In this document: piece after piece, positions 35,823 through 58,039 of the stretch
How the letters are laid out: every line of letters begins with the position of its first letter
Position numbering within the stretch: position 1 is the first letter of the stretch
Source: Oculina patagonica
Taxonomy: Eukaryota
Assembly (NCBI RefSeq): GCF_052425735.1
Contig: NC_135758.1
Coordinates: 12,710,001 to 12,774,000, forward strand
DNA: 64,000 nt
Direction of reading: 5' to 3'
Made by a program: the position numbers and the translations under genes
Notes under the pieces: generated by a model
The model's database searches: none
The model's input: only the letters and a program-made list of their open reading frames with translations
Told to the model about the DNA's origin: nothing

Positions 35823-35963
35823 CTTTTCGTCTGATTTTAGTTTATCATCTGTTTTGCCACTTTCGAGTTTCGGTTTTCCATACCATCTGTCGATCAGCGG
35901 CTGAATGAACTTGTGCCAGATAAACAGAAATACTGGCACAAGTATACACGATATTCATACCAT
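35823..35963 (-). CDS. C18orf32: C18orf32/UPF0729-like small membrane protein, exon 1, with in-frame TGA (putative Sec) at codon 3
   Basis: Minus strand reads cttcaaaATG GTA TGA ATA TCG TGT ATA CTT GTG CCA..., i.e. MV(U)ISCILVPVFLFIWHKFIQPLIDRWYGKPKLESGKTDDKLKSDEK, then an AAG|GTAAGA donor. This matches the family N-terminus as I recall it (human [22 protein letters not shown]). Confidence 0.88.
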
Positions 35964-36099
35964 TTTGAAGAAAGAAAAACGCTTTTTCCCTCTCAACGAA
36001 AAAACTTCACAACGTTTCCTGTATCTCTGCTTCTTTTGACTGAAAACAGGCGACAACGCATGCTCTTTACTCGACGCCGAAATCAACGCGGGCTCAGTA
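35964..36099. promoter_or_regulatory. Bidirectional promoter / 5' UTR region between head-to-head genes
   Basis: Only 136 bp separate the minus-strand ATG (35963) from the plus-strand ATG (36100); the region is locally CpG-enriched. Confidence 0.7.
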
Positions 36100-39000
36100 A
36101 TGGAGGCTGCATTGGTAAGTTTTTCGTCTTTACGATGTCAGTTAATTTTAAGCTTTTTTGGATGTTTCAGCATTGTTAAGAGTTTTTATATTTTTGTGTT
36201 ATTTTAGGAGGCCTTGAGATCGGTCTCCGAAACAGATCAGGCCAAAAATGCTCTTTCTTTGATGCAAGTTTATGTCAACAACATAGTGAAAGATCCAGCG
36301 AATCCCAAATACAGAAAAATTCGAATAAGTAAGTTAAGTTAATGCTTAGCCTCAATGACCGGTCTTCAATTACCGGTACACGTAGGACTGGGAGTGGTTA
36401 TTAAGAAAAAGGTCTGTCTCTTGCAATATATGGATATAGCTATAATTACATGATGTATTTGTTTGAGACCTTGTTGCATGAGTAATAACCCGGGTAATAA
36501 TCAGCTGAGAACAAAGTGCTCAAGCTACAGTGTATTGGAAGAGGGGGTGGCTGGGTATGGAAGTGAAGAGGTGAACATGATGTTTCTCTTATTAGGAGGT
36601 GGGTGCAAATTTCTTTTGGCCCTTCAGTCCTATATAATTTTTCAACAAAAGGGCAGTAGCAGGTCTTGACAAAGTGCACCAGCAAGTCATGTGAGCAATT
36701 CTGGTTAGCCTAAATAACAGATTTGTTAGCCTAAATAGTACTCTGGTTAGCCTAAAGTTAGCTTACAATAGGGAGCTTGCAGTTAGCCTGGCATAAGGGA
36801 TTTCTGACTCGCCGCATGGCTTGTGAGTCATGCAAATGGTCAGTGTAAAACATAAAACACAGACTGGGGTATAAATGGCAGACTCAAACTGCGGACTAGG
36901 TATAAAATACGGACTACAGTATAAAATGCGGACTAAGCATGCAAACTGCTTGCAAACGTGACCTGATGGTAAAAATAACCATAAGCATGACTGTAAGCAT
37001 AAAAAAGTTGACTCACCTCGACCAAATTAGCCTTTTTCCTGCAGAAAGCCTGCTCGTAGGTTACGGCAAAGTACTGTCAAAACACCTTAAAATTCCCTCC
37101 AATTGTGCCGGAGGAGCTTAAAATTTGTTTTTGTTTCATTCGCTTTAGTCTTCAATTCTTGGATCGGAGTTGCAGTGGAGACTCGACAGATAACTTAAAC
37201 CTCCTGCTAAACTCGAACTTTTCCGATTCCCCTCCAGGTGTTTTTTTTTTTTACTTATATTACCCTCGCTAACTCGAACTCCTGATATCTTGAACCTTTT
37301 TCGATCTCCCTTGAAGGTTCGAGTTATCGGGATTCAACTGTATATCTGGCCAGCCTCAAGCGGCAGTCATGTGAGAATTTGACAAACAACCTTACTTTGC
37401 ATGACAAAAAAACTGGGTCAGACGTTTTTTCCCCGCATGTTTTTCTTCTGCCAATAGAATTTTTTAGCCTCTTCAGTACTCGAAATTTCGTGCCTCTTTT
37501 TTGGTATTACGGGAGTGTTGAAATAAGCGAATGGCGAAACGTGAAAAAAACTGTGTGTTAGTGTAGCGAAAATAAGCAAATTCGTACCTATCTGTTGCGT
37601 GAAGCCAGACGATAATACACTCAACATTTGAGTTTGGAACCGGAGTTTTGAATCGCGATATTGAGCTGCCATTTAACAAGGAATAATTCATTTCGAGGAT
37701 GGGATGTTGAAGAAAAAATAAAATAAAATTTCTAAACCAAATAATTTACTCTTGAGAAAAACCCTTTTGTTGTTTTGACTGTAAGGGGTACCATAAGGTA
37801 GCTTGTTTTTACTGTATTAAGGTACTTTGCTGAGGAAGATCATAATTGTTCGTTGTGAATCCCTACGAGGTTCAACGGACGACGAAACATTAAACTTTGA
37901 ACAGGAATTATTCACTCTCTTCGGTAACAAACATCAACGCAATACGAGCAGACAACGATTACAAAGGTCACATGAAGCCGTTGCGCTACATGGGGTCATG
38001 CGCACAGTTTTGGCGCGAACAATAATAATTTTATGCTCACGTATACATCCTTGATGGGATCTCATTATTTCTAGCTGTGGTTCGCTTTTAAACGCATTTT
38101 ATATGCTTAGTACGCATTTTATACTGTAGTCCGTGTTTTATACCTAGTCCGCTGTTTGAGTCCGCATTTTATACCTCAGTCCGTGTTTTATACCCAGTCC
38201 GTAGTCCGTAGTCCGCAGTCCATGTTTTAAACTGACCGGTCATGCAACAACCTCGTTCCCAGGGTCTCTCTCTCACCGCCCCCAAGAGCGAGAGGGGCTC
38301 TTGGGGGCGGTGAGAGAGAGACCCTGGGAACGAGGTTGGTCATGCAAATCATGCGAACCATTCTGGTTAGCCTATAAATAGTACATTGGTTGGCCCAATT
38401 AGCACTTGGGTTAACCTAAATGGCACTCTGGTTAGCCTACAGTTAGCTACGGTTAGCCTTTTATTGCTTCCGTTAGTTCTTCCCCCTGGTGGGGAATAAG
38501 GCCAGAGCCTTTTATAGGGTTTTGGGATATGTAAATACTATGTAATTGTCGTGTCTTTCGTGCTTAAATGCACGTGGGCGCGATTGGCAACGTAACTCTG
38601 AATAATTCCGTGTTTTGCATGCACGTGACATTTTTTGATTTTGGGAACGAGTATTTTTGACTTTGTAATTAGATTGGGAGCGGTTAGTTAGTTCGCGAAG
38701 TTCGCGAAGAAAGTTACGAATTTTCAGAGAGTTTCGAAGCGAAACGTAGGACGAAATGTAGGGCTGCGTAGACACGCATGGCTTAGAGATGTACGTTAGC
38801 TAAAAAACTATGATACGGACTGGACTGGCCATGAAATTCACATTCTTCGAAACTCTGTGGATTCGTCGAGATTCTACCGATGAATATTTAATTTCTGCGA
38901 AATGGAGTCGCACATTTTGGCCGAAGATGATCATATGCGGGAACAAATGGAGCCCCCAGAAAGAATTACGGCTTGGAAAAGATCGAAAGCTGGTCATCAC

Positions 39001-42000
39001 GGTGAGACGACGAAGATTTGTAGCCGTCTGGACGAAGTGCTCAAGGATTATCGCCATGCTGGCGAAGTAATGGAGCTTAGTCGTCGATTGAAGGATCAAT
39101 GGTCAAAGTATTGTTTTGTACACGAGCAACTTATGAAGCATTTGCCTGGTGAGAGAGAAAAGGCGGATGAAAGCGATCGTTTTGATGATCGAGCTCGAGC
39201 TTATGAAAGATACAGTTTTCTGATCGAACAATTCATGACTCGTACTAACTTTACGAATGGAGGAACGGAAACAGTTGTTACTAAAGACCGTTCTAATCGT
39301 GTGGAAGATGCACGGAGTTCTGTTTCGGGCGGTTCTCGGAAATCCAGGCGTTCAAGTCGTAGTTCAAGTTCAAGGTTACGTGAAAACGCTGCAATTGAAA
39401 GCGTAATGGCCGAAGTGAGATTGGCGCAATTAAGGAGAGCAAAAGAGAGAAGATTGGAACAGCAAATGTTGCAGTTGGAGAATGAAATAGCTGACGCTGA
39501 AGACGAGGCCAAGTTAGCCCGAGTAAAAACCCGATTTTATGAGCAATTGGATTCAGAAACGTCGAGCATCGATGATCCACTCGCTGAGCTTGAGGTAGAG
39601 AAGGGAAGGCAGCATCTCGATCAAAGAAAGGATATGCCTGAGCCTTAGCCACGCGTCTTTGCCCCAAAACCAATACCCCCTGAAAAGATCTCAAGTTCGA
39701 CTAAGGATCCCAATGTCCGCCCTCTTGCTCAGCCTAAAAGGGAGTATGGTGGATCGTCTGAGAAAGTTACAAACACTGACAGTATTCTTCAGAGTGTTGT
39801 CACCAATATGAACTTGATTGCGACCGGGGCGACCTTGCCCCCACTGGAGGTAGTTAAGTTTTCCGGAGATCCAAGCGAGTTCTTCAAATTCAAGGCACGT
39901 TTCCATCAAATGGTGGACTCTCAGAATCTGTCTGATTCGCAAAAGATGTCTCGTTTATTGCAGTTCCTCGAAGGCAAAGCGAGAAAAGCAGTGGAAGGGT
40001 TTGAAGGCATGCCCGGTGGAGTTAGGAAAGCCGTGCGATTACTTGAGGTACGTTTTGGCCAGCCTCACATGATAGTGAAAGCATGCGTTGATGGTTTAAT
40101 TGAAGGACCAAACATTTCGAACAGTGACAAAGAAGGCTTAAGAGAGTTTGCGGATCGTAGCAGGACCTTGTATGAGACTTTGGTTGCAATGAATGCTTTG
40201 TCTGAGATGAATCTCACCAATCTGGGAAAAATGGCGGGAAAGCTTCCTACTGCGCATCAAGCTAAATGGAGGGACGAGGCTCAGCGGATCCGTGAGCGAG
40301 GGACACTACCAAGTTTCAAAGACCTGTTGGAGTTCATTGAGAAACGCGCAGATGCTATAAACGATCCAATCTTTGGTCGAATTGGAGAAACAAGCAGAGC
40401 TCCGATCAAACCTGGCAGGAAAAATCCCAAAGTGCCTAGCGCGCCTGGAGCCGAAGGTAAAGTGACAACGCTAGCAACGCAGCTCACATCTGGTTCACCT
40501 CAGCAGAAGGATCCACGCAATACAGGCCGATCAGCAAAGTGTATGAACTGCCAGGAATCCCACTACTTGGAGGATTGCGGTAAATTTAAGAAACTAACTC
40601 TGAGACAAAGAAAGATTTTCGTTCGAGGAAGAGGGCTTTGTTTGAATTGCCTGAGGAAAGGACATTTGGTTACTCAATGTGTTTTCAAATCGAAGTGTAA
40701 CCTGTGCTCACAGAAACATCATGTCCTCTTACACAACGCTGCGTCGGATTGTGTTGATTCCCCTTGCCAAAGCCAGGAACAAGTATCTGCCAGCGTAATG
40801 ACGGGCGATGGTAGAACCTCAGGTTCTCCTAGTCAAAACCATGATCAAGTTAAAGTGTCTGCGAACGTAATGACAGCTGAAAGTGGTACATCCAGTGTCC
40901 CCACCTTTGACCAAGCTGCCAGCGGCATCGCAACGGTCAGCGTGGTGAACTTTGCTAAGTCTGCATCTTACAAAGCATGCAGCCAGACAGCCTTTAAGTC
41001 GCATAAAGTTGCCCTGCAAGTGGTACCTGTGAGACTGGAGGGGGAGAATGGGCAAACGGTGAACACATGGGCGTTGCTCGACACGGGAAGCGAGGATTCC
41101 TTTATTGCCAAACCTACCGCTGACCAGCTAAGTTTGAGAATAAAGAGTTTCGAGTCGTTGGCGGTGTGTACCTTGACTGGCGAGACAACTGTGCGTGTAG
41201 GCAAAGTGGACCTAGTAGTCTTACCAATAGAAGATTCAGAAGGCCACCGAATTCAGATTCACGACGTCAAGGTTGTTGAGAATCTCAATGTGAGCTCGTC
41301 CAGACCGCAGGACTTGTCGAAATGGGAACACCTAAATGGGATAGCAATGCCAGAGATTGACGAGGAAGAAGTTACCTTGCTTATAGGAGCAAACGTCCCT
41401 GAAGTTCAGATACACGAAGAAGTTCGCGTTGGAAGAGCCGGAGAACCGTATGCTGTCCGGACCCTTTTGGGGTGGTCCATTCTGGGACCGCTTAACAGCA
41501 GCATTGGAATAACATCTGACAAAGTAAACGTGAACTTTCTAAAGTATGGTAGCCAGATGTTGGACCAACAGATGAATCAGTTTCTTGGATTTGAGAACAC
41601 TGAATGCATTAGTAGCAGTAAGAAGGGGATGTCAGTCGAAGATCGAGAATCTTTACACAAGCTGAACAGTTCTGTTCGCCTAGTAGACGGCCGTTATGAG
41701 GTCGGAATGCTCTGGAAGTACGAAAATCCGTGGTTGCCAAACAACAAAATGACCGCCGAAGCTAGACTTCGCTCTCTGAAAAGAAAGTTGTGCAGAGAGG
41801 AGCAGTTGCTATGCAAATACCGGGACTTTATGGACGACCTTTTGGTAAAAGGCTATGCTAGAAAGCTGACCGAGGTGGAGGCGGAGGCTCGAAGTCCCAG
41901 GACGTGGTATCTACCGCACCACGGTGTCTTTCACCCGCAAAAACCGGGGAAAATTCGAGTAGTATTCGATGCAGCAGCAAATCATGATGGAGTCTCCCTC

Positions 42001-45000
42001 AACAGCCAGTTGAATCGAGGGCCTGATTTAACGAACAGTCTGTTTGGTGTGTTGCTGAGATTCAGACAGGAACGCATCGCTCTTGTTGCAGACATACAAT
42101 CCATGTTTCTTCAAGTGAAAGTACCTGCTGAAGACGCTGACGCTCTCCGTTTCTTGTGGTGGGAGGAAGGCGATCTAAATAGACCTCCTGGGGAGTACCA
42201 GATGGTCCGTCACATCTTTGGCACTAAAGATTCTCCGAGCTGTGTAAACTTTTGCCTGAAAAGAACCGCTGAAGATAACAAGAACGACTTTAGTGAAGAA
42301 GTCGTTAGGGCTGTCCAAGAAGATTTCTACGTTGACGATTTGCTGAAGGCTGTGGAGACGACCAGTAAGGCAATTTCACTGGCGCACGAATTGATGTCTC
42401 TTCTCGAGAGGGGCGGATTTCGTCTGACTAAATGGACAAGTAATTCTCGTGAGGTGTTAGCCAACATACCTGAAGATAAACGAGCACAGCCAACTCTCAA
42501 CCTGGATTTGGATCAGCTGCCGATCGAGAGAGCGTTGGGAGTCCTGTGGAATATCGAAACAGTCTTAAAGCCAGACAAACCAGCTACGAAACGAGGTATC
42601 CTGTCGACTATTAGTTCCCTTTACGATCCTGTGGGTTTCGTTTGTCCAGTGGTGCTAGAAGCAAAGAAGATTATGCAGCGGCTGTGGAAACTGCAGTTGG
42701 ATTGGGACGATCCTGTCCCAGAATTTGAGCTGGCCCACTGGGAACTTTGGAAGTCTGAATTATCAGCTTTATCGCAAGTTCAAATACCAAGATGCTATCT
42801 CCAGCTACAAGGAGAAGTAAAGGAAATCTCTCTCCACCAGTACTCAGACGCGTCAGACGAGGGTTACGGCATGTGCTCCTATCTGCGGTTCGTTTATGAA
42901 GATGGGTCCATTCAGTGCTCGTTTCTGGTTGGTAAATCAAAGACGATGCCAGTGAGAGCTATTTCAATCCCAAGGCTCGAGTTACAAGCTGCAACGTTAT
43001 CTGCCAAGATTTATCAAGTTTGCAGGGATGAGTTAACCTATCCAACTACCTTGCAGTACATCAAGAACAAGAACTTCAAGTAGTTTATAACCGGGCGGTT
43101 AATGTTGGACCACTTCTTTCAGCGTTTTGGCTAGAAAGGCACGGCGCCGCTTTGTAAAAAAAAAAACTTTAGAAAAGCAGTCACTTGAGAAACACACAAG
43201 CCGTGTTTGCGTCAGTCACGGAGTGTGCGTGACATGAATTTTCTTTATCACGTCATCTCCTGTTTTAAACCACATGCCTGGCCGGATAAATTTCTGCTTA
43301 CGCATGCAGTATTTATTTTGTTCCGGATGTTGAATAAAATAAACCCAAACCAGTTGAATGACATTAAAGAGAAGTCCATTTCACGCCAAAATAAAGACTA
43401 GACTAAGGCCATCCCGTTGTATTTCTTCGTTTAGCGTCGTCTGACGACTTAAGTCCGCGGTTTGCAAGAGTCACGGGGTTTGCGTGAACTGTAGCAGTGA
43501 GCGAAAATTCTCTTACTCACGTCATCCCTTTCTTTAATAAACTTGCATCAACAAATTCCTGCCTGTGCTTGCAAATTTTTATATTGTTCCGAATCTCAAA
43601 CAAACTACACTCAAACCACTTGAATGGCATAAATTGATTTCGGTTAAAATTAAAGAAGCTTTAAAATCAAGTTCTTGAAGTTTAACTGCTATTTCCCCCA
43701 AAAAAAAACAGCTTTCAGAAGCATTTGGGAAGTCGCGTGATTCGAAGCACGTAATTCTAACTGGGAGATTCGCTAGGTAATTCCCCTTTTCGTGATGACG
43801 TGTGTCCTGTGCTTTGACAAATTTTTGCTGGGTTTGCAATTTTCGTTTCGATTCCAAAAATAAACTCAAAAACACTTGCAAAACACACGAAAAATAATTC
43901 ATATTTTCATTTAAAACTAGTTTGGACATGTCAAATCGCAACGCGAATGTTCAAGCCCTGAGCCAAACGCTTGAATATCAATTTAATGAACAATCGCCAG
44001 AAACATCAAAATTTGCGTGACCGTGACCTCCTTCTGGAACGATTTACCGACAAAAAAACGACAAAAACAAAACCCCAGGCAGATTATGAACCGGGCCCAG
44101 GCCCCGCCCGGTTAATGAAACAAGGCGTTTCAACACCTACGTAGCTAACAGAATTGCTGAAATTCGTGAGATTACCAGGCCGGACCAATGGAGACACTGT
44201 CCTGGAAGGTTGAACCCAGCCGACGACGCCTCGCGTGGCTTAAAGCCTAAAAGGTTATCAAGTCAGCATCGCTGGTGGAAAGGACCAGAGTACTTGTGGC
44301 AATCGGAGAACAACTGGCCCAAAACTGAGATTGGCGAAGTTCCACATGACGATCCTGAAGTTCGAAATGAAGCACAAATTCATTCAATCAGGACTGTAAA
44401 CCCTTACGTTAGAGTTCACTCAGATGCTCGATGCGCGAGCAAACCGACCGTTTACGAGATGATATCGCACTACAGCTCTTGGTTTAAGTTGCAACGTTAC
44501 GTTGCTTGGCTAGTGCGATTCTGCTACTGGCTAAGGTCCCGGGAAGTCTCCCCAACGACACGAACACTAACCACGGAAGAGTTAGAAGAGGCAACACTGT
44601 TTCTCATGCGGTTGGTTCAGGCTGAAAGCTTTGCAGAAGAACTGAGAGACCTCAAGGCCGGCAGGGAAGTGAAGACGTCGTCCAACTTGTAAAGTTGAAA
44701 CCGGTACTGACGGAAGGAATTCTTCGTGTCGGAGGTCGCTTAGAGGAGGCAGTAGTGCTGTCGTATAACGAAAGACATCCCGTAATACTTCCAAGGAACC
44801 ATCACATCAGTCAGCTGATCGTCCGTCATTGCCACGAAAGTTTAGCCCATGCCGGCAAGGAGCAGACCCTGGCTCAAACAAGGAAAATGTTCTGGATTCT
44901 CGGAGGCAGAGGTTTAGCAAAGAGCACCATTAGAAATTGTGTGAAGTGTCGCAGATTGAACGAGAGGCCTATGAAGCAGATTATGGCTCCCCTTCCTAGA

Positions 45001-48000
45001 GAGAGATTAGAACCATACAATCCGCCCTTCACGTTCTCTGGTGTCGACTTTTTCGGTCCACTAATGGTTAAGTGGGGCCGCGGTTTAGCAAAGCGCTGGG
45101 GATGCATTTTCACTTGTCTGTCCACGCGAGCTGTCTTCCTCGAACTTGTGCCCTCACTGGAAACTGACGATTTCATCATGGCCTTGCGACAGTTCATTAG
45201 CCGAAGGGGTCCTCCCAAGGAAATTAGATCAGATAGAGGCACTAACTTTGTTGGCGCGGAGCGCGAACTCAACGAAGCCATCGATAGGTGGAACCACGCA
45301 AAAATTTGCCAAGAATTGCAACAAAAAGAAGTCAAGTGGACCCTTCATCCCCCAGCAGCACCTCACATGTCCGGGGTCTGGGAGCGACTAGTGCAGACTA
45401 CCAAAAAGCATCTGAAGGCTGTCGCAGGAGATAGATTGCTCGGTGAATTTGCGTTGCGAACACTGCTAACTGAAGTGGAATCCATTATGAATAATCGTCC
45501 AATCGTAGCAGCATCAGATGACCCTGCCGATTTGGAAGCATTGACCCCCAATCACTTCTTGCTGCAAAGGAAGGTGTCTGGGTTGCCACCAGGGCTTTTC
45601 GTCATGGAAGACCATTTGGGCAGGAAACAGTGGAGAAAGGTCCAATACCTAGCCGACGTCTTCTGGAAGAGGTGGATTAATGAATATCTACCGAGTCTGA
45701 CTGAAAGAGGAAAGTGGTTAAGAGACCAAAGGAAGGTTAGAGTGGGCGACCTGGTTCTCGTTTTGGAAGAGAATGTCCCTCGCAACAAGTGGACTGTGAG
45801 GGAAGAGATTCAAAGGTGCGATCCGCTAAGGTGAAGACTTCAAGCAAGGAGTTGCTTCGTCCAATCGTGAAGCTGTGCCTATTAGATGGACAGGAATGAA
45901 AGACACTTACGAGGATTAACAAACGCTTAAACTTTGACGTTTGTGGGGCCGCTGTCGTGTCTTTCGTGCTTAAATGCACGTGGGCGCGATTGGCAACGTA
46001 ACTCTGAATAATTCCGTGTTTTGCATGCACGTGACATTTTTTGATTTTGGGAACGAGTATTTTTGACTTTGTAATTAGAATGGGAGCGGTTAGTTAGTTC
46101 GCGAAGTTCGCGAAGAAAGTTACGAATTTTTAAAAGAGTTTCGAAGCGAAACGTAGGACGAAATGTAGGGCTGCGTAGACACGCATGGCTTAGAGATGTA
46201 CGTTAGCTAAGAAACTCTGATACGGACTGGACTGGCCGTGAAATTCACAGTAATTCTGGTTCATGTGGCTAGCATGCCTCACTGGCTCGCCTATTGTACA
46301 CACTTGGCAGTGGCCCCCTTGACCAACCACTGTATACCTGTATATCTAAAATACACATTTAAAAAAAAGAATTTTAGCAGTCGGAGTTTCTATTTAAATA
46401 CATGTACCGGTACATTAATTTTGATTGTTGTCAATACTCACTGATCAATGTTCTGCCTTACTATAACTAGGTAATCCAAAGTTCAATACAGCCATCTGGC
46501 AGCTGGAACAAGCAAGGACATTTTTGTTGTTTTCAGGATTTGAACAGGTGCAATATTTGAAAATACATGTACCCCGGTATTTGATTTTAATTTTCATGTA
46601 GATTGTTGTTGTTGTTGCAGGACAGTCAACTTTCCATCTGGTGTCCATAAAATAGGGGTTTTAGTATATGAGGTTGATATAGGCACGCAGTGACGTACAT
46701 AAATGTAGTAATTTGATTTTCATGTACTTCTCTTTGGTCTTATTCCAGGAAGGGGACTTTTTAGTTCTTCCTTCTTCTATAAAACTAGATGGAGCCAAAC
46801 TTTTGATTGATGAAGCTCTTGGCATTTCACCGTCAAACCAAACAAGCCATGCCAGTACCAGTGCTCCTTCAAATACAAGTCAACCTAGCAGCATGCTCAA
46901 GCTTAATGCAGCAAAAGGTGGGAATATTGATCAGCATGTTAATAAATGCTGCTTCTCTTTTTGACCATTTAAATTACCTCATTTTCCATTTGCATTTAAT
47001 TACTTGCTCTAAATGCCAAACAGTCACTATCCTCTGTTAAGGGGCATCTCCCATTTAGCAGTCAACTCATTTTTATAGTGGACACAAAATACTATACAAA
47101 ACAATAAAATTATAACATTTGATGTCATGTATATGAAATGATTGACAAGTGATAAAAGTGATAAAGTGATAAATGATCATCACAGCGAATTTCCAATTTT
47201 AACATTTTAACACATCTATTGTCATTTTGACTTGATAATGACGTTAGCCTAACGTTGAAACGTCGTCGTTTTTAACAAACTTTTTAGCTTTCTTAATATG
47301 CTTCGAAATATTTTATCGCATTTTTTTATAGTTAAAAATAACTGCAAAGTCAATTACCAGAGAGGTCCGCTTTTAGGCTTGGCTAAATCTATTTAATGAA
47401 ATGATAATAAAATGATGTTACTTAATTATTGTTATTGATTTTTCATCAGACTGTAGCTTGTTTGATCAAGATGTGAAGGCAGATCTTACATTGCTTTCCT
47501 ACATGAAAGAAATGGGTATGCTTTAAAACACTCTCCTGAAAGCCTTATTTTGATAAATAATAACTAAGTTTTATAAATTCTCTCCCCTTTCTCCTTGCAA
47601 TATCAAACATGAATGCAGTGTTACAGCAAGGAGGTTGTGTCAGAACTCTATTTTAATAAAAGGTGATGTGCGTTGGCTTGATTCAATGCCTTGTTCTTAG
47701 AAGTAGTTTTGAAATCACTTCATAGCGATCAGTAAAGAAATTAATATAAAATTATCCTTTAGCTGAAGTTTGAATGGTTTAAACTACATTTACTTTTAAG
47801 TACATATTAATTAAAAAAAACAGTTTGAATCATTTCAAGACAGCATTATTTCATGATAATTTTATTGTACTTCATTGTCCCAACTGCCCCATGTAATGGG
47901 CAAAATTAATACTTGCAAGGCATTTGTTGATGCAGATTTGTTACACAAAATTGTATGGTGTAAAGGGCCTTAATGTTGTTTTACTTGAAGGTTACGATGT

Positions 48001-51000
48001 TGCTGTGGCAGAGAATGCTTTAATCGCTACTAAAAACAAAGGGATTCAGCCTGCTATAGATTGGTAAGAGTTTTGAATTAGTGCTTTACAAAATCTTCTT
48101 GTGAATACCTATTTCGAAAGAGTGACATTTATTTACATGTAGTACATACAGTGGGCATTACTCAGCATTTATGAAGCACACCTGGTGGCACCAGTGTGCT
48201 TCACCAAGACCCATTGCCACCCTTCAATCCCAACACACTATCCTGTCAAAGGGCCATTTCCAGTCGAAGGGCCACTGATAGAAGCAGATTGAATGCCTTG
48301 CCAAGGACAGAGGGGATTGCAGGATCTTTGTCAGTGGCCTATGCTCCAAAATGGAGTTGGCAGGCTTCAGGTCAGATCAGTATTGCTGCTTCCTCTGGAT
48401 GGGGTGTAATATTTACATCACAGGATGAACCCCTTCTAACCCCCCCCCCCCCCCCCAAAAAAAAATAAATAAATAAATAAATAAAAAACTTCATCATTTT
48501 GTCAATTCACTGGGAGTGTACCTATTTATTTTTTCTGGGTAGAGAGAAACACTTCTAATATGAGTTGCATGAGTATCCTTCTCAAGAACACAGTGCAGTG
48601 TCCATGGCCAGCCCTCAAACCTAGACCACTCAATCCACAGTGAAATGCTGTAACCATTACAGTACACAACTGCACCGGCTACCTGAGTGCCATTAACAAT
48701 CATGTTAATTTTTAGCTTTTATTTACCTTGCAAGGATAAACCAGAATCCTGATAAAGCAAGAGAGAAGTTACAACAATCGGGAACTAATGTTGCATCGGA
48801 TGTACTGCATGGCAACACACAGGGTATCAGTCAACAGTCGCTTGCTAGCAGCTCTTCACCTTCAGTAAGTCCATCATACCGACGGTGTATTACCTTACCA
48901 AATTTTGCAATTTTATTTGGACAATCAGAATCCTTGTGTACTGCCCTGATTTCCTACAACATTAAGTCTTGAACCTGATATCACCAGATTTCTGGCCAAA
49001 TTTGGGTATGGTTAATACACAATTGCACCTTTTTGGTACATTTTGGTGGTATATTGGGCCCATTGGTATTTTGGCTTGACTGCATCTCACAAAAACATGA
49101 ACCATGGCTTCACCAAATTGTCTCAGTTATGCTGCCGAAGCATACCAAAAAGGTATGATTGCAAATAAAAACCATCCCAGCCAGTAATAAGGGTTAAATT
49201 AATTGTGTAGAACAGTACGTGACAAAATTATGGATTCCAAATTGTATTAAAGTAATTGTGAATATCAGTGGTGAGGATATGAAGGGATTTCTGCATGCTG
49301 ACTGATACTGGAATAAAATGGAACAATATTAATTACATGTAATACTTTGAATGATATATTTCAAGCCTTATAGTTTCATTTTATTCAGAGTGAAGATTTT
49401 GGCAGGTATTTAAGTCCATTTATAATTAGCTGTAATGGCATTTTGATATACTAGGTTCCATGTCCTCAATGCTTTTTCTGCATTCATGTTTAAAAGAGTT
49501 GAATAGCCTAAAATTGTGTGTAAAGTGCATGTATAATATGGCTCAAAACTCAAGGTAATAGGTACTCATAACTCTGTTTGCTTCCAATCACCCAACTAAA
49601 GTATGGCTTTGTTGTGGTTTGAATTTCTCTTTGGTTTAAAATTTTTCTAACCAGGTTGATTTTTATTTTTCATTGTCTCAAAATCATTATCATAATCTTA
49701 AACAAACTAAGGAAATAAAAATCAAACTGGTTTGAAAAATTTTAAACCAAGAAAAAAATTGAGCCACAACAGCTTTATTTGTAACTTACCATCAACTGCA
49801 ACCTTTCCCTGGCTCATAATTAAGCATATTAGCTGGGTTGGTCAACATGCATTACCGAACTTACAGACTTACAATGTTACATTATACATATATACAGACT
49901 AGACAGGTTTTTGGAGAACTGTGGAACTGTGGTTTATGAATACATGTGGAAAAGTACTGATTTAAACTGATAAATCTATTACAAAAGCATTAAATATTTC
50001 ATCCTTCACAGCCTGCACCAGTACAGTCTAGATACCAAAAGACATTAGATGAAAGGCACAAGTTTCAGGAAAGACTCAGACTGGAAGCAATTGAGGAGGC
50101 AAAGTATGAAAACAGTACATGTGATGGTGTTAATTATTTATATGTCCAGGTTGCAGGCACAAACCTTAACTGTATGTCCCACTGCTCCTCTTAACCTAGT
50201 TTAGTGGTGCTTTCTGTATCGTCACGTGACTCCTGTCAGCCCTTATTTATTACTTTATTGCACTACTCTTCTTAATAACTTGTATGTGTGTGTGAGTGTT
50301 AAGGTGCCTCCATTTTCTGTAGGTTGGAAAAGCAAAGAAAGAAACTACATAAGGAAAATTTATTGAAAGATATGAAGGATGAGAAAGATGAAAAATTAGA
50401 AAAGGTATGAACCAGGCATTGAGCTTACTAGTTCTGTGTATAAACTTAATAATGACTTTAATAGATCCTGATGCATTCTTGTAAGCATAAAAAATGGACT
50501 ACGTAGTGTTACGTACATGTATTATGAGGCAAAGGTAACAGGTCTGATTTCATTTATAAACACATGGCATCCCATAATCTTTTACCAGGCAAAACAGGCA
50601 AAACTTGCAGAGGATGCAGCTGAGCCTTCAAACAAAGCCATCACTGATCAGCAGTGTGGTGATGGTGAATCACCAATGGTGGACTTGAGAATAAGAATGC
50701 CAGATGGTCAGGTACTTCATTGGTCGATAATTTGCCATTAGAAAGTTCTTTACTTTATATTTATATGTGACAAATCATCTAGTGGAGGAAAAAACGCAAA
50801 ATGCTTATGCCCTGTTAATGAAATGATAAAAAATTATTTAAACATTGTTTTGAGATATACTGCAACATACATGTATCTGTTCGCTTAGAATTCTTAAAAT
50901 TATTCAAGAACTTGTCAACAGTGTTTCAAATGTATCTGCGTTTGACTGGCTGACAATTTTTGCGTTCTTTTTCTAATCTCTGTTCTTCAGGTCTTATCTC

Positions 51001-54000
51001 TTAGTCTTTCCAGCAACTCAACAATTCAAACATTATATCAGTGAGTAACTTGCATTTTGTTTTAAAAACTAATACCAGTATTATTAGTAACTAGAAGTTC
51101 TATACAATGATCAAGTAAATCCTACAGGTTTTACTTCAATGCAAGTATGTAAATAAAATATACGATTTCTCACACAATCATTGCTGATTTTCGTCGTGGT
51201 GAAGTGCAGGACCTACCTATACTTGCTTGTGTGGACCTGTGCAAGCAAGTATAGATTTGAAGACTTTCTTCAAATCCTTGCTTGCTTGGTCATGTTAGGT
51301 TTTTGCGTCTGTCTTATTCAGGAGTTCCATTTTCTCAATTCTGTAGCCTTTATTTCATGGATCGACAGCTACTTTGACAATGCTTTGATACAATTGACCA
51401 TCAACGAGAGAATTGATCAGATGCGTAAAAAAACTGACATCAATGGTTTATTTGTTGGTTTTAGGGAAGTTAAAAATCAATTGCCTTCGAATGACAGCCA
51501 AAGCTTGGATGACTTTGTCCTCATGACATCGTTTCCGCAAAGAAGAATCTCTGACATGGAAAGCACCTTAGAAGCAGCAGGTAAATTCATAGAGTACAGG
51601 GCGCGTGGCAAAAATAGGAACCCTTTTTGCCTCGCTCCCTCCTCCGGGGGAGGGTGTAAGTAGATGATTTGCTATGTGCTTGTTAAATGTGTGATTTTGT
51701 CACCCATGTAGGTTTGGCCCCACGTGCAGCACTTGTGGTACAGAGGACAGATCAGCAGGGTGTGCTAACCCAGGGGGAGGGGCCAGGTAAAATTTGTCTC
51801 TTTTTTATGTTACAGTCAAAGCCTGTAGGGTAGCAGAGTTGTAGTTTTTTTTTTAAGCTGATCGTGCGCTTAGCAAACAAAACACACAGGCGCTTCGTTC
51901 TCACTTCGAGCTCGGTGGAGAACCGCACATGTTCCGTCAGCCGTAGCTTTAAAGCTCGGACGCACAAATCTACATTGAGCGCAATGAATTTCCACCCAAA
52001 GTATCAGTCATTTTCCGACTTCGAATTCGGTCAATCCGATGTCACATCCCAATACACCAATTTTTTTTTCGACTTTTCTCCCCTGGAAGCAAAAATTGGA
52101 AAAGTTCCGATTTATCTTTTCAGCTGCTATATCCAGCTACCATCACCAACTTTGGTACGTGTTCGTAAACATCAGCCAACTTGCTTGCCGCTTCAACAAT
52201 GATACGCGAAGTACTGCAGTGTGTGATTCCGTCAGCTAAGATCGTTGCCTGCAAATTTGCGTTGTGTGTCCCGGTAACACGGTATGAAATGGATTCTATC
52301 TCGCTATATCCGGTAATTCTGTTCCCTTCAAACTGGTTTAAAATGGAATGAAACCTCAAAATAATAACTAAAAAGAGATTCTAAGAAGACAAAATGTCAT
52401 GGAGTGCAGATGATCCAAACTGGATTAAAAGGAGAGGTATCAAACTGAACTTTACTATTGTGGTAATCGAGAGACGTTTAGGCTTGTAAATAGGTCTGCT
52501 AGGAAGTCATTTTTGTCCGTTTCTCATCTGAGAGGCCCAGATTTCTCCGGTAAATTTAAAGTTTTTGATTCGATTTTAAGATTATATTGCAGACTGCAAA
52601 AGATAACTCGACCAATCATTTATTTATACGTGATAAAACATCTACAGATACAAATAGTTTGACTTGCAAAAGTGTCTATCCACCAGCATTATAGATGTTT
52701 CTCGGACTGCATAACTGTCACTCGACGCTTCAGTTTTTTTTTTCTGGTGTGAAATTTAACTCCACTGTTTTTGGTTGTTCGCTAATTTTATCTTGACTGG
52801 GACCTAAGAATAACCCGAAAGAACAAAACACAGATTGGCGAGCAGCCCGTAATTGCGCTATTCTGAAGTGGTTTCCATTATGTGCGTCTCACAACGTTTC
52901 CATACAGCAACCACTTGAAAGTTCCGAAGGTATTGGTACCGGCCCTCTAGTAACTCCCGAAGATAGCGAACCCCTCGCCAAACGAAAACAACGACCTCTT
53001 ACGGTAAAAATCCCCTTATGAATGCCCCTGTAGGAGTATAAAAAGCAGTAATTTGAACAGGGCCGGTCTCAGTGCACAACATTTGAACAAAAATTATTAT
53101 TTGTTTGAGTGTGAAAAATTGTTTTTTGTCACAAATAAAAAAAATACAGTTAGATTTAGTAGAAAAAAACGCTAAAAGAGAAGTCGCCCGAACTTTGACG
53201 TCATAAGTCGTCATACCTTTGTAACAGTCAAGTTCTGTCTGCATGTAGTAAGTTTGTCCGCAAGATCTGCTACAGACTCTAATTGATGTTAGGATCTCCC
53301 TGCTTGAATGTAAATTTTAAATGTAAAATTACCTCGCTTGTTATTTCCGCCGTTGTCCTCGTTCAGTCTGTGTAAACAAAAAATTTTATTCTATATAGGT
53401 TATACTTTTAATTTTTATTGGTTAAATATTGTCGCTGAAAAAACGTTTGTTAACTTTATAGCGGCTTAATTATCGGGGGTTGTGGTTTTATTTCAGTATA
53501 TAGCGTAAGAAATGTCACGAAAATGGACAATTGGCAGGAATTATTGAGTGAGCAAGACAAACTTATTGTTGTTCAGTTTTACGCTCCTTGGTGAGTTCAA
53601 ATAATTTGCTTTAGTCTATGTTATTACTGTTCTTTGCATTCCTTATTAACAAACACTGAAAAAGCCTTTGATGGATGTTTTCCAACTACAAAACGTTACA
53701 AATTTCTAGAATCTGCTTTTTTGTTGCTGTTGTTGTTTTTAATTTTCGTTACGACTGCTCAGTAAACTTCGTCGTTTTCAGGTGTTCGTTGTGCCGGTCC
53801 GTGTCAGACTCATACGATTCCCTGAATGCCAGTTATGGAATGAACGGGCAAGTTTTGTTTGCACGTGTGAATGTCGACGAGTTGAAGGTTGGTGACGCTC
53901 TCAAATATTTTTTTTCCTCGAACAGTGATGTTGCTTTATCAGTTTGTGTAAAGAGCTTTATTGTGCGTTTACTAGCGATAACACCAACGCCACGAAGCCC

Positions 54001-57000
54001 ATGAGTCGGTCCACACTCCCACTCATTGGAAGCGATGAAGGACTCCGTGCTGACCTATGGGACGGCATTATTGAAAACGTTTCAAAAACGCCTGTTTGCA
54101 GGTTGTAAATCGTTTGTAACTGTCTGTCTTTGTCTTCTGTTTTCCCTCTGTTTAACAATTCTTTGCCTTTTCTTTTAGTTAACAATTAGACTACGCGCCC
54201 AAGTTTTCTAAGAGTGAATAGCCGACGAGGTACGGTCGAGTTCACTTTCGCTCATAGAAAGCGAGGGCGTGTAGTATAATTGCTGTAGTTGAGTCTCCAA
54301 AGGAATACAGTCCAAAACCTACAAAAATCGTGATTAATTTTCCCTTAGCATTTAGAAGTTTATTAGAGTTTGCTTGCCTTGTGATAACTTTATAGGTTGC
54401 TTTTACTTTAAAGCAAGGGCTTGGGGGTGGTGCTCGTTTTGTTAATTGAATCCCTGTGATTAACGTCTTTCAATTTGGTGAACTGGGTTGTAGCGTTTAA
54501 GCTCGGAGAAAATTAAGTCATGTCTATCCTTACTTCCTTCCCTAACCTTCTATTTATTAACATGCTATTTTATTTAAAAGGTGTTAAAGTACCAACAAAG
54601 AGTCACTTCACTGCCCACATTTAAACTCTTTTGGAATGAAAAGGTATTCGATATTTGTTAGTTATGATCTCTCTATATTAAAACGAACTTGTTAAATTTG
54701 CGAATTGCACATTCCCGATCGATATGGAAAGGCACTGAGCTCCCACTTTTATGTCAATAGCCACCCTGGGAAATTATTACATGTGAGTGGCCGTTAATGC
54801 GAAGTAGCCGTTGGTGTCCATTGTACTTATGTAGAGAGGTGGTCGTTGGGACGTTTCAGTAGAGTATGTCTATGGATTTGCGCGGTCGTTTAGTCGACCA
54901 CACGATCGAATGTCTTCTGTATAGTTTTTGTAGTTCTGGTTTATGTATGGGTTTTGTATGGTTTGTGTATGGATTTTATATGATTTGTGTATGGTTTGTG
55001 TATGGATTTTATATGGTTTGTGTATGGTTTTTATATGGATTTTATATGGTTTATGTATGTTTTTTATATGGGTTTTGTATGGTTTGTGTATGGATTTTAT
55101 ATGGTTTGTGTATGGATTTTATATGGTTTATGTATGGTTTTTATATGGATTTTGTATGGTTTGTGTATGGATTTTATATGGTTTGTGTGTGGTTTTTATA
55201 TGGGTTTTGTATGGTTTATGTATGGTTTTTATATGGGTTTTCTGTATGGATTTTATATGGTTTCCCTCGCGGCTTGCTCCAAATTCCTCGCGACTCCGCG
55301 GTTCCCTCTCTTTGCCGTTCGCCGGCCCGTCTCAAAGCAAGCACTCGCACTCGAATCCCGCCAGCTACGCAGGCTAGGTTTATGTATGGTTTTTATATGG
55401 GTTTTGTATGGATTTTGTATGGTTTGTGTATGGATTTTATATGATTTGTGTATGGTTTGTGTATGGATTTTATATGGTTTGTGTATGGTTTTTATATGGA
55501 TTTTATATGGTTTATGTATGTTTTTTATATGGGTTTTGTATGGTTTGTGTATGGATTTTATATGGTTTGTGTATGGATTTTATATGGTTTATGTATGGTT
55601 TTTATATGGATTTTGTATGGTTTGTGTATGGATTTTATATGGTTTGTGTGTGGTTTTTATATGGGTTTTGTATGGTTTATGTATGGTTTTTATATGGGTT
55701 TTCTGTATGGATTTTATATGGATTTTATATGGTTTGTGTATGGTTTTTATATGGTTTATGTATAGTTTTTATATGGGTTTTGTATGGTTTTTATATGGGT
55801 TTTGTATGGTTTGTGTATGGATTTTATTTAACAAAATAATTAATAAAGAAGCCTAAGCCATGTTTTATACTGTCATAAAACACGACGGGCAATTGAGAAC
55901 ACGAGGGAAATGTAGAAAACATGAGCCGCAGGCGAATGTTTTCTACATTTCTCGAGTGTTCTTCAAATGCCCGGAGTGTTTTATGACAGAATAAAACATG
56001 GCTTAGGCTTCTTTATTTGCTTTATGATATAGATTTTAGACACCGCGAGTGAAAAGTTTAATTAAAAATATGTACAACAAGAGCGAGTAAACGAAGACGA
56101 AAAGCAGAAAATAATTTACGGGAAGACCACAAAACTGACACAATTTCATTCAGTGTTCGACGTAAAATAAGGCTAAGCATTTCAGATAAGTTTGTTACCT
56201 TTCAATCTCGATCTTGTCTTTTTGAACTTCAATAAACTTCACCGACTCTGAGTGCAATTTCGTCTCAGCATAATTTAGTAGTCTCGATGACATCCGTCCC
56301 TTGCTTCGTTCGACTTAAAAACGCGTATAATTTCCAGAAAAGCTATTGCTTCGGATCTTCCCGTAAACCTTAATTGCTGTCACAATCAAGTTCCAGTATG
56401 AAAAGACGATTTAAGACGAGATTGTCGAAGAAAATCTTCGAAAGAAAACTCTCTCGCTCGCTTTCCTCAGCTTTCCTTGCGAGTTTCATTCAACTCAAGC
56501 GGTGAACACCGCGCCACAATTTTTCCCGCCTCACTTCGTTTACATCAAAATGAAATGTCCAGTGGATTTATACTTAAAAAAGGAATTTAAAAAAACAATT
56601 ATTCCATTCGCCCTTGCTGGATACGAGTGGTTATAGCCAACGAAAAGTCAAAGACGCGCGAAGCACTCGAGGAAAGCTGACGAAAAACAATAAAACATGA
56701 TTTTTCTATGTTTTATACTCTGATAAAACATAGGTTTTTAGCCAATCAGAGCGCGCGTAGACTCCTATCTATATTATAAATGGATTAAATATGGTTTGTG
56801 TATGGATTTTATATGGATTTTGTATGGTTTGTGTATGGATTTTATATGGATTTTATATGGTTTGTGTATGGATTTTATATGGATTTTATATGGTTTCTGT
56901 ATGGTTTTTATATGGTTTATGTATAGTTTTTATATGGGTTTTGTATGGTTTTTATATGGGTTTTGTATGGTTTGTGTATGGATTTTATATGGATTTAATA

Positions 57001-58039
57001 TGGTTTGTGTATGGATTTTATATGGATTTTGTATGGTTTGTGTATGGATTTTATATGGATTTTATATGGTTTGTGTATGGATTTTATATGGATTTTATAT
57101 GGTTTGTGTATGGTTTTTATATGGTTTATGTATAGTTTTTATATGGGTTTTGTATGGTTTTTATATGGGTTTTGTATGGTTTGTGTATGGATTTTATATG
57201 GATTTAATATGGTTTGTGTATGGTTTTTATATGGGTTTTGTATGGTTTTTATATGGATTTTGTATGGTTTGTGTATGGATTTTATATGGTTTGTGTGTGG
57301 TTTTTATATGGGTTTTGTATGGTTTATGTATGGTTTTTATATGGGTTTTGTATGGTTTTTATATGGATTTTGTATGGTTTGTGTATGGATTTTATATGGA
57401 TTTTATATGGTTTGTGTATGGATTTTATATGGTTAATGTATATGGGTTTTGTATGGTTTGTCAAGTTTGTGAATGGTTGTTATATGGGTTTTGTACGGTT
57501 TGGTATGGTTTTGATATGGGTTTTGTATGGTTTGTGTATGGTTTTTATATGGGTTTTGTATGGTTTGTATATGTGGTTTTGTATGGTTTGTGTATGGTTT
57601 TTATATGGGTTTTGTATGGTTTGTATATGTGGTTTTGTATGGTTTGTGCATGGTTTTTATATGGTTTTTGTATGGCTTTTGTATAGTTTTCGTATGTTTC
57701 TGTATGAGTTTTGTATGTTTTTGTGTGGGTTTTGACAGTATGGGTTTTGTGAAGGGTTTTGTATCGTTTTTGTATGGTATTTTCTCATCATAGCCTAAAT
57801 CGCTTGGAGTAGTTGTACATCTGCCTTAAAAATTGCAACAACGAATTTTATCTATGGTGACAATATCAATTTTAAATTGAAGTGTTATCGCTCTTTTGTG
57901 TTACTAGGTGATAGCTGACGTAGAAGGAACTGACATGGAGGGTTTGAAGCAACAAATTGAGGCGAACGTAAATGGACCAACAGACGTGGACCAGCCGGAT
58001 GAGTCGTCAATGGATGAAATGTTCCATGACCCGAGATAA
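36100..58039 (+). CDS. PUB-UBA-coiled coil-UBX-thioredoxin domain protein (putative p97/VCP cofactor), ~527 aa, 17 exons
   Basis: Phase-consistent exons: 36100-36114, 36208-36328 (PUB: VYVNNIVKDPANPKYRKIRI), 46471-46547 (SNPKF..FLLFSGF), 46749-46917, 47450-47515 and 47991-48063 (UBA: MKEMGY..AENALIATKNKGIQPAIDW), 48735-48864, 50012-50103, 50323-50404 (charged coil), 50589-50711, 50991-51040, 51465-51580, 51712-51786 (UBX: LRIRMPDG..TSFPQR..TLEAAGLAPRAALVV), 53497-53590, 53782-53887 (Trx: VVQFYAPWCSLC..FARVNVDE), 54581-54643 (SLPTFKLF), 57908-58039 (stop). Total 1584 nt, open throughout. Confidence 0.88.
36837..38238. mobile_element. Non-autonomous TIR element (Mutator-like, ~10-bp TSD) with repetitive subterminal arrays
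   Basis: Ends (T)GGTCAGTGTAAAACAT / ATGTTTTAAACTGACCG, mirrored TATAAAA..CGGACT subterminal repeats, target GTCATGCAAA duplicated. Confidence 0.7.
38248..38338. mobile_element. Palindromic MITE with 9-bp TSD
   Basis: CAACCTCGTTCCCAGGGTCTCTCTCTCACCGCCCCCAAGAGC ... GCTCTTGGGGGCGGTGAGAGAGAGACCCTGGGAACGAGGTTG forms a near-perfect hairpin; GTCATGCAA on both sides. Confidence 0.88.
38902..45834 (+). pseudogene. BEL/Pao gag-pol polyprotein, disrupted
   Basis: In-frame TAG at 39646-39648 (same frame continues), HINE insertion at 43068-44115, frameshift near 44692, and apparent small internal deletions. Confidence 0.9.
43068..44115 (-). mobile_element. Helentron-associated non-autonomous element (HINE/DINE-1-like) inserted in BEL pol
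   Basis: Subterminal inverted repeats TAACCGGGCGG (43088-43098) / CCGCCCGGTTA (44104-44114), a nearby partial inverted copy (AACCGGGC, ~44089), and a short ACTTcAAGT hairpin at the other end. No TSD; removal restores YIKN|ETRRFNTYVANRIAEI. Confidence 0.72.
49610..49770. mobile_element. AT-rich fold-back MITE
   Basis: GTTGTGGTTTGAATTT..TTGGTTTAAAATTTTTC mirrored by GAAAAATTTTAAACCAAG..TTGAGCCACAAC. Confidence 0.6.
54938..57779 (+). repeat. 11-bp-unit minisatellite (TATGGTTTGTG / TATGGATTTTA / TATGGGTTTTG variants) in intron 16 of the PUB-UBX-Trx gene, interrupted at ~55264-55376 and ~55827-56789
   Basis: Well over a hundred degenerate 11-mers; the source of the low-complexity MVCVWILYG ORFs. 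Confidence 0.95.
55827..56789. mobile_element. Interspersed repeat inserted into the minisatellite, with a ~175-bp hairpin at 55842-56017
   Basis: AATAAAGAAGCCTAAGCCATGTTTTAT ... ATAAAACATGGCTTAGGCTTCTTTATT inverted arms; non-satellite sequence. Confidence 0.6.

Follow-up and report, generated by a model that had tools for sequence, protein, structure and literature searches.

A conserved anthozoan protein joining PUB, UBA, UBX and thioredoxin domains, and its possible role as a redox-active adaptor of p97/VCP

Introduction

The window analysed in this work, a stretch of 64,000 nucleotides from the coral Oculina patagonica (assembly GCF_052425735.1, contig NC_135758.1, positions 12,710,001 to 12,774,000 of the forward strand), carries the gene LOC144657354, whose predicted product joins PUB, UBA and UBX domains to a C-terminal classical thioredoxin domain. 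The locus raises the question of whether these four domains truly belong to one protein and, if so, what a thioredoxin might do on a protein whose other domains point to the AAA+ unfoldase p97/VCP. The data described below indicate that the gene is real and expressed, with a single 527-residue product. The gene is already annotated, without a name, as an 'uncharacterized protein', and it represents a conserved anthozoan family that is not peculiar to the Oculina genome. On balance, and with little more than even confidence, we read the product as a UBXN1-like p97 adaptor that would tether a disulfide reductase to p97, where it would act on p97 clients.

One gene and one open frame across the UBX-thioredoxin junction

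The original prediction, made from the nucleotide sequence, had proposed 17 phase-compatible exons giving one open frame. Reconstruction of the gene from the sequence yielded 17 exons on the + strand between positions 36100 and 58039, with AG acceptors and GT donors throughout, a start ATG at 36100 and a TAA stop at 58037-58039. The resulting coding sequence is a single open frame of 1584 nt (527 codons plus the stop), and its translation is letter-for-letter that of the RefSeq entry 'uncharacterized protein LOC144657354 [Oculina patagonica]'. The exon model and the NCBI annotation were reached separately and agree.

The junction between the UBX and thioredoxin exons, from 51786 (CAG/GTAAAA) to 53497 (TTTCAG/TA), phase 1 to phase 1, had been proposed as evidence of a real fusion, with RNA junctions as the check. 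Contigs from four public runs (four studies, three coded organism labels) were mapped on the region 49950-54900. These runs contain about 0.09-0.15 of the sampled words of the stretch, near its exonic share, and were taken as RNA-like because their contigs cover exons and skip introns, the run records being silent on type. A GT..AG joint 51783>53494 (with the cut at +3 equal to 51786/53497) was present in all four runs, at depths of 101, 49, 130 and 28, equal to those of the neighbouring exon-exon joints, so that the UBX gene does not end before 53497. Furthermore, every internal junction of the model within the mapped region was seen as a GT..AG joint, and in run X4 a single 2158-nt contig spans 50012-53884 and contains the helix, UBX and thioredoxin exons together. 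The WCSLC active site is coded across the boundary of exons 14 and 15 (TG/G TGT TCG TTG TGC), and the RNA contigs continue from 54644 into sequence matching 57908 onward, with two substitutions. Altogether, the UBX-thioredoxin fusion is real, since RNA-like contigs from four runs show it spliced, the RefSeq model contains it, and other hexacorals have it too, both in gene models and in contigs of transcript size.

An in-frame ATG is present at 53521-53523, within exon 14. A stand-alone thioredoxin gene starting there was considered and rejected, because the first strand of the fold (VRNV) is coded upstream of this ATG and the RNA contigs splice into 53497. In run X1, a low-depth contig (51763-52017; depth 8.5 vs 101) crosses the donor of exon 13 unspliced, and may correspond to unspliced RNA or to a minor UBX-only isoform. 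If translated, the read-through product would end 15 residues past the donor and would be UBX-only, like the normal product of Acropora.

Four domains in an adaptor-like arrangement

A Pfam search with the whole 527-residue protein at curated cut-offs placed all four of the proposed domains above threshold: PUB at residues 15-80 (PF09409, 1.2e-18, 67.2 bits vs a cut-off of 34.3), UBA at 141-181 (UBA_7 2.5e-08 and UBA 1.7e-05, both past the cut-off), UBX at 303-382 (PF00789, 8.6e-15, 55.2 bits vs a cut-off of 21) and Thioredoxin at 404-502 (PF00085, 1.2e-19, profile positions 5-102 of 103). Among the other thioredoxin-like Pfam families only Thioredoxin_7 matched, below threshold and in Nematostella alone. 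The closest solved relative of the PUB domain is the PUB domain of PNGase (2hpj/2hpl, 4.6e-08); the core NPxxxKYRxIRxxN is kept, and residues K39, R41, I43, R44 and N47 are invariant across 12 cnidarian sequences. For the UBA domain the closest solved chain is 1whc ('UBA/UBX 33.3 kDa protein'), which we take to be mouse UBXN1, and for the UBX domain it is the UBX of UBXN7, with that of p47 also related. The thioredoxin domain is closest to thioredoxin 2yoi (4.9e-19 over 100 residues) and to catalytic domains of protein disulfide isomerase (PDI).

An AlphaFold2 monomer model, obtained with a 12-sequence alignment as input, contains four confident folded units and, between UBA and UBX, one helix of 57 residues (225-281, 56% charged), which takes the place of the coiled coil that had been claimed. 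The UBA domain is modelled as three helices at 140-177, and the linkers 98-134, 187-226, 284-302 and 387-397 are disordered, as is the tail at 511-525. The thioredoxin domain shows the full topology (strand-helix-strand-helix-strand-helix-strand-strand-helix), with a predicted local distance difference test score (pLDDT) of about 85-90. No hydrophobic segment was found in the protein (maximum 19-residue Kyte-Doolittle score 0.95), and therefore nothing points to a signal peptide or a membrane anchor.

The active site WCSLC, proposed as intact and atypical, lies at residues 428-432 and proved to be both, with cysteines at 429 and 432 and an inner dipeptide other than the canonical GP. The cis-Pro loop (SLPTF) is at 477-481. 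The only cysteines outside the CxxC pair, Cys129 and Cys298, are located in linkers. From these features the thioredoxin looks catalytically competent.

The protein ends in an acidic tail (57980-58036, residues 509-527) that terminates in DPR in the orthologues too, Dendronephthya included, so that DPR is kept from octocoral to stony corals. The tail reads DEMFHDPR in Oculina, DEMYFDPR in several corals, and DDTYVDPR or EEYFDPR in others, usually with an aromatic pair before DPR. Acidic-aromatic motifs are ligands of PUB domains, and the DPR tail resembles them, so that self- or cross-binding of the tail to PUB is conceivable. Folding of the tail back on its own PUB was unsupported by the AlphaFold2 monomer, in which residues 511-525 have a pLDDT of about 42.

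Conservation in hexacorals and loss in other lineages

A search of a representative protein library with exon 2 of PUB alone (41 aa) yielded fragments for the most part and served to reach the Acropora cluster. Homology searches were seeded with an Acropora orthologue and continued with a 12-sequence profile. The same four Pfam domains were found in proteins of Montipora foliosa (522 aa), Porites lutea (534 aa), Pocillopora verrucosa (525 aa) and Nematostella vectensis (502 aa), as well as in three further contigs of 2015, 2008 and 2540 nt, each with a whole four-domain frame (500-537 aa). These contigs can only be spliced mRNA, because a complete frame is held in about 2.0-2.5 kb. Fragments were also recovered from Desmophyllum and Orbicella, under the automatic names 'Thioredoxin-like protein 1' and 'thioredoxin Y, chloroplastic-like'. 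The eight aligned hexacoral sequences (Oculina, Montipora, Porites, Pocillopora, Nematostella and the three contigs) all retain the Trp, the two cysteines and the cis-Pro, as do the Desmophyllum and Orbicella fragments, with active sites of the form WC[S/A]xC (WCSLC, WCSSC, WCALC and WCADC). Compared with Oculina, the thioredoxin domain is 64-78% identical in stony corals and 56% identical in Nematostella, and UBX shows the same level. Regarding RNA contigs from close relatives, all seven listed differences in exon 15 are synonymous, and four of the five listed in exon 14 alter amino acids in and next to the first helix.

Outside this group, the proteins of Hydra and of a 409-aa relative consist of PUB-UBA-UBX only, without thioredoxin. 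In Acropora, the proteins of four species stop with ...LTQGGGTESDSNNGKD directly after UBX, as do Acropora-like transcript contigs from the same 90% cluster, and no thioredoxin was found in the 1.4-kb 3′ part of a 2778-nt Acropora mRNA contig (Logan). The Hydra and Acropora orthologues are listed by NCBI as 'UBX domain-containing protein 1(-like)'. Montipora belongs to the same family as Acropora and keeps the domain, and the absence in Acropora reads as a secondary loss. On the simplest history, PUB joined a UBXN1-like core in early cnidarians, thioredoxin was gained before the split of octocorals and hexacorals, at least one octocoral lost its cysteines, and Acropora lost the entire domain.

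No non-cnidarian protein of this family's sequence turned up in an index that needs shared 5-residue words, which makes this weak evidence. A word-indexed search with UBX plus thioredoxin (residues 300-527) returned coral fragments only.

Proposed role and alternative readings

UBX domains bind the N domain of p97, PUB domains its C-terminal tail and UBA domains ubiquitin. From this family knowledge we infer that the coral protein would bind both p97 and ubiquitin, as a soluble adaptor of cytosolic type. Its core would be UBXN1/SAKS1-like (UBA, long charged helix and UBX), with the N-terminal PUB presumably added in cnidarians and the C-terminal thioredoxin in anthozoans. With UBX on the N domain and PUB on the C-terminal tail, docking on p97 would be at two points, the UBA would hold the ubiquitin chain of the client, and the thioredoxin would be tethered about 15 disordered residues behind UBX. 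In such a position Cys429 and Cys432 could reduce disulfides of oxidised or cross-linked ubiquitylated clients, which p97 would then unfold and thread. The adaptor would thus play the part on p97 that TXNL1 plays on the 26S proteasome. Both the reductase activity and its target are putative.

Several observations weigh against this proposal. The UBX loop reads TSFPQRR, where the aligned UBX of UBXN7 has TNFPRRK; Phe-Pro is kept, and the Arg has become Gln, with an Arg directly after it. Nematostella (SYPQME) and Hydra (PYPHKV) have a still more degenerate loop. Where E. coli thioredoxin has a buried acid before the active site (Asp26), stony corals carry Gln (VVQFY) and Nematostella carries Glu (VVEFY). 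Activity does not strictly require Asp at this position, since the PDI domains aligned here also have Glu (VEFYAPWC). The residues between the cysteines vary (SL, SS, AL, AD), and therefore the redox potential would not be fixed. These features of the UBX loop, the Gln and the dipeptide advise caution against assuming a standard thioredoxin. In addition, the octocoral Dendronephthya keeps the thioredoxin domain (pairwise E 6e-18), its cis-Pro and the ...FDPR tail, with a 4-residue deletion that removes both cysteines, and Acropora is without the domain altogether. The fold can therefore be retained without redox chemistry, and the redox function appears dispensable in some lineages, since one lost the cysteines and the other the domain.

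Two other readings concern the thioredoxin itself. Its target might be p97 rather than the client: the domain would keep or reset redox-sensitive cysteines of p97, and the adaptor would be a redox regulator. Consistent with such a role, Cys115 of yeast Cdc48, in the UBX-binding interface of the N domain, is reversibly oxidised, with altered cofactor binding (PMC12137173), and a like redox regulation of Cdc48 was proposed by the authors who described diatom sPUB (PMC3101018). The short tether behind UBX would also place the domain close by. The presence of a ubiquitin-binding UBA, however, argues for client engagement, and we regard p97 as an unlikely target.

The thioredoxin fold might instead serve mainly as a non-catalytic binding or scaffold module, like the Cys-free UAS domain of FAF1, FAF2 and UBXN7, with the CxxC of minor importance. 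The Cys-free domain of Dendronephthya, the Gln of stony corals and the variable dipeptide all fit this idea. On the other hand, both cysteines and the Trp are present in every hexacoral sequence, from stony corals to the sea anemone, a conservation that would scarcely be expected unless redox chemistry were under selection. Furthermore, the domain aligns over its full length with the catalytic Thioredoxin family PF00085 and is C-terminal to UBX, whereas UAS, as described in the original prediction, is placed before it. We consider a mainly structural function improbable.

A broader scenario is offered tentatively. Anthozoans might have built a reductase into the adaptor so that proteins with disulfide bonds or oxidative cross-links can enter p97, with UBX and PUB holding the p97 hexamer and the CxxC acting on the client or on the redox-switch Cys of the p97 N domain. 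Fusions of thioredoxin to UBX or PUB in algae, oomycetes and rotifers would then belong to a general redox arm of p97/Cdc48, and Acropora would be a natural loss-of-function lineage.

The weakest alternative, two neighbouring genes (a UBX adaptor and a small thioredoxin) joined by a coincidence of phase or a chimeric prediction, would draw on the ATG at 53521, on a phase match that costs only one chance in three and on the minor read-through contig with its Acropora-like, UBX-only product, but we regard it as very improbable given the full-depth joint in all four runs, the contig bridging both halves, the thioredoxin strand coded 5′ of that ATG, the whole four-domain frames of the three coral contigs and the annotation of the fusion in five other genera.

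Comparison with known systems

The adaptor reading places the coral protein beside three groups of p97 cofactors. With UBXN1/SAKS1 it shares the central arrangement UBA, coiled coil and UBX, and its UBA is nearest to chain 1whc; the cnidarian members differ in the added N-terminal PUB, the anthozoan ones also in the C-terminal thioredoxin, and the UBX loop is FPQ, not FPR. As in UBXN6/UBXD1, PUB and UBX occur together, which implies that the adaptor touches p97 at both ends. The coral PUB is nearer to the PNGase PUB than to that of UBXD1 (1.6e-03), however, and UBA and thioredoxin are added. UBXD1 has helical N-terminal motifs. FAF1, FAF2 and UBXN7 are likewise UBA-UBX adaptors with a thioredoxin-fold domain, and UBXN7 provides the closest solved UBX. 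Their UAS domain lies before UBX and is without CxxC, whereas the coral domain follows UBX, matches PF00085 over its whole length and keeps WCxxC.

Tethering of a thioredoxin to such machinery has precedents. The best functional analogy is TXNL1 (thioredoxin plus PITH), whose redox-active thioredoxin sits on the 26S proteasome while substrates are processed (PMC12700817, PMC12700798, PMC10570131). Here, too, a redox-active thioredoxin is held on an AAA+ machine by a docking domain, but the docking domain (PITH) and the machine differ, and homology is limited to the thioredoxin fold. Diatom sPUB, a component of SELMA, the periplastidal machinery resembling that of endoplasmic reticulum-associated degradation, fuses thioredoxin to a Cdc48/p97-binding PUB, and redox regulation via Cdc48 was proposed for it (PMC3101018). 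It resides in the periplastidal compartment, has a YbbN-like thioredoxin and is reported only in stramenopiles and chromerids (PMC12412216). As published, sPUB consists of thioredoxin plus PUB only (PMC3101018, PMC12412216), whereas the Oculina protein belongs to an animal host, runs from its N-terminus straight into PUB without a hydrophobic leader and has a thioredoxin nearest to classical and PDI types; sPUB is an independent invention. In C. elegans PNG-1, a thioredoxin with reported disulfide-reductase activity (cited in PMC6429583) occupies the place of PUB on peptide:N-glycanase. PNG-1, a cytosolic quality-control enzyme with an active thioredoxin domain, is a further precedent from the same pathway; the coral protein has both PUB and thioredoxin, and their partners are UBA and UBX, not a glycanase.

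Further combinations appear in the automatic Pfam content of ESM Atlas clusters: Thioredoxin with UBX and UBA_7 in red algae, Thioredoxin with UBX in green algae, rotifers and unrecorded taxa, and Thioredoxin with PUB and UBA in diatoms and oomycetes. These clusters are leads only. The cnidarian protein is one of several independent unions of a thioredoxin with a p97-binding module, and the recurrence of such fusions in unrelated eukaryotes suggests a general link rather than a coral curiosity.

The original prediction knew of no characterised protein with all four domains. This stood in the sense that full-text literature searches turned up no publication dealing with a PUB-UBA-UBX-thioredoxin protein or any other UBX-thioredoxin fusion, and the domain set, conserved and unusual, is apparently undescribed. 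It has to be qualified in that the gene was annotated and that sPUB, PNG-1 and the ESM Atlas clusters are precedents for tethering a thioredoxin. No described p97 cofactor with thiol-disulfide chemistry was found, and therefore the handling of disulfide-bonded or oxidised cytosolic clients by p97/VCP looks open. The proteasome has a thiol-disulfide cofactor in TXNL1, and a CxxC-bearing adaptor would give a direct handle on the p97 question. Nematostella has the gene and is genetically tractable. Natural contrasts are also available, between Acropora, which lost the domain, and Montipora, which keeps it, and in the octocoral that lost only the cysteines. For coral biology, the protein might connect oxidative stress with protein quality control.

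Exon structure and other features of the locus

The exons are listed in Table 1 together with repeats and other elements of the introns. Exon 3 sits just past a long terminal repeat (LTR) retroelement, and an Acropora mRNA contig (2778 nt) aligns there at 46468-46548 with 81% identity. An open stretch at 37149-37237, with an AG acceptor, a GT donor, a phase that fits exon 2 and a faintly PUB-like translation, was tried as exon 3 and rejected, because the Acropora orthologues point to the exon listed and only that model gives the RefSeq protein. This pseudo-exon is a trap for ab initio gene models.

Table 1. Exons of LOC144657354 and other features of the locus (positions in the window; a slash within a sequence marks an exon boundary; joints are those of the RNA-like contigs, with the shift of the cut in brackets)
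Feature	Position	Strand	Content and evidence
Exon 1	36100-36114	+	Start codon, residues 1-5 MEAAL; donor TTG/GTAAGT; N-terminus matches orthologues ME[AD]AL
Exon 2	36208-36328	+	First half of PUB, NPKYRKIRI motif; exon alone PUB 1.3e-08, 35.1 bits (cut-off 34.3); donor A/GTAAGT
Exon 3	46471-46547	+	Middle of PUB, SNPKFNTAIWQLEQARTFLLFSGFEQ; located via Acropora orthologues
Exon 4	46749-46917	+	End of PUB and Ser/Thr-rich disordered linker; pLDDT <50 at residues 98-134
Exon 5	47450-47515	+	UBA helix 1, DLTLLSYMKEM; phase 1 to 1, GT-AG; TLLSY invariant in 12 cnidarian sequences
Exon 6	47991-48063	+	Remainder of UBA, GYDVAVAENALIATKNKGIQPAIDW; exon alone UBA_7 0.015, UBA 0.11
Exon 7	48735-48864	+	Disordered linker; in RNA contigs (runs X1, X9) the 30 letters before 50012 are 48835-48864
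Exon 8	50012-50103	+	Start of long charged helix; joint 50103>50323 GT..AG in 4 runs
Exon 9	50323-50404	+	Charged helix; joints 50103>50323 and 50402(+2)>50587 in 4 runs
Exon 10	50589-50711	+	Linker and UBX strand 1; joint 50707(+4)>50987 in 4 runs
Exon 11	50991-51040	+	UBX; joint 51040>51465 in 4 runs
Exon 12	51465-51580	+	UBX, SFPQRR loop; exon alone UBX 0.015; aligns to UBXN7 UBX 'TNFPRRKLS'
Exon 13	51712-51786	+	Last UBX strand and short linker; donor CAG/GTAAAA; joint 51783(+3)>53494 in 4/4 runs, full depth
Exon 14	53497-53590	+	Thioredoxin strand 1, helix 1, strand 2, Trp of WCSLC; profile 4-28
Exon 15	53782-53887	+	CSLC active site, helix 2, strand 3; thioredoxin profile 30-61
Exon 16	54581-54643	+	cis-Pro loop SLPTFKLF; joint 53884(+3)>54578 in 3 runs
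Exon 17	57908-58039	+	Last thioredoxin helix, acidic tail ...HDPR, stop
BEL/Pao-type LTR retrotransposon	38547-46249	+	Intron 2, same strand as the gene
BEL/Pao terminal repeats	38547-38842 and 45953-46249		Direct, about 300 nt, 96-99% identical
BEL/Pao frame	39649-43080		DUF1759, aspartyl protease, Pao peptidase domain
BEL/Pao frame	44626-45831		Integrase domains
Satellite arrays	54937-55827 and 56790-57782		Last intron; unit 11 nt (TATGGTTTTTG); higher orders 22, 33, 55 nt; about 75% matches
Dispersed repeat	54172-54230		Intron 15; summed contig depth 370-1480 in all four runs
Covered segment	52274-52439		Intron 13; depth 67-91 in runs X2, X4, none in the other two

The insertion of the BEL/Pao-type element looks young because its terminal repeats are nearly identical; between its two frames there is about 1 kb without a long frame. 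The satellite arrays fill much of the last intron, and the strong G-over-C and T-over-A skew there, as well as long spurious frames in all three + frames, are due to them. The highly covered segment of intron 15 is a dispersed repeat present in many other transcripts and not an exon, since in the contigs it lies between stretches of unrelated sequence. Nothing past threshold came out of an Rfam scan of 51700-54900. The covered segment of intron 13 might represent a further dispersed repeat or a transcript limited to certain strains. Finally, a gap of only 137 bp (35963-36100) separates the start codon of LOC144657354 from the start of a neighbouring gene on the minus strand, and the two genes probably share a bidirectional promoter.

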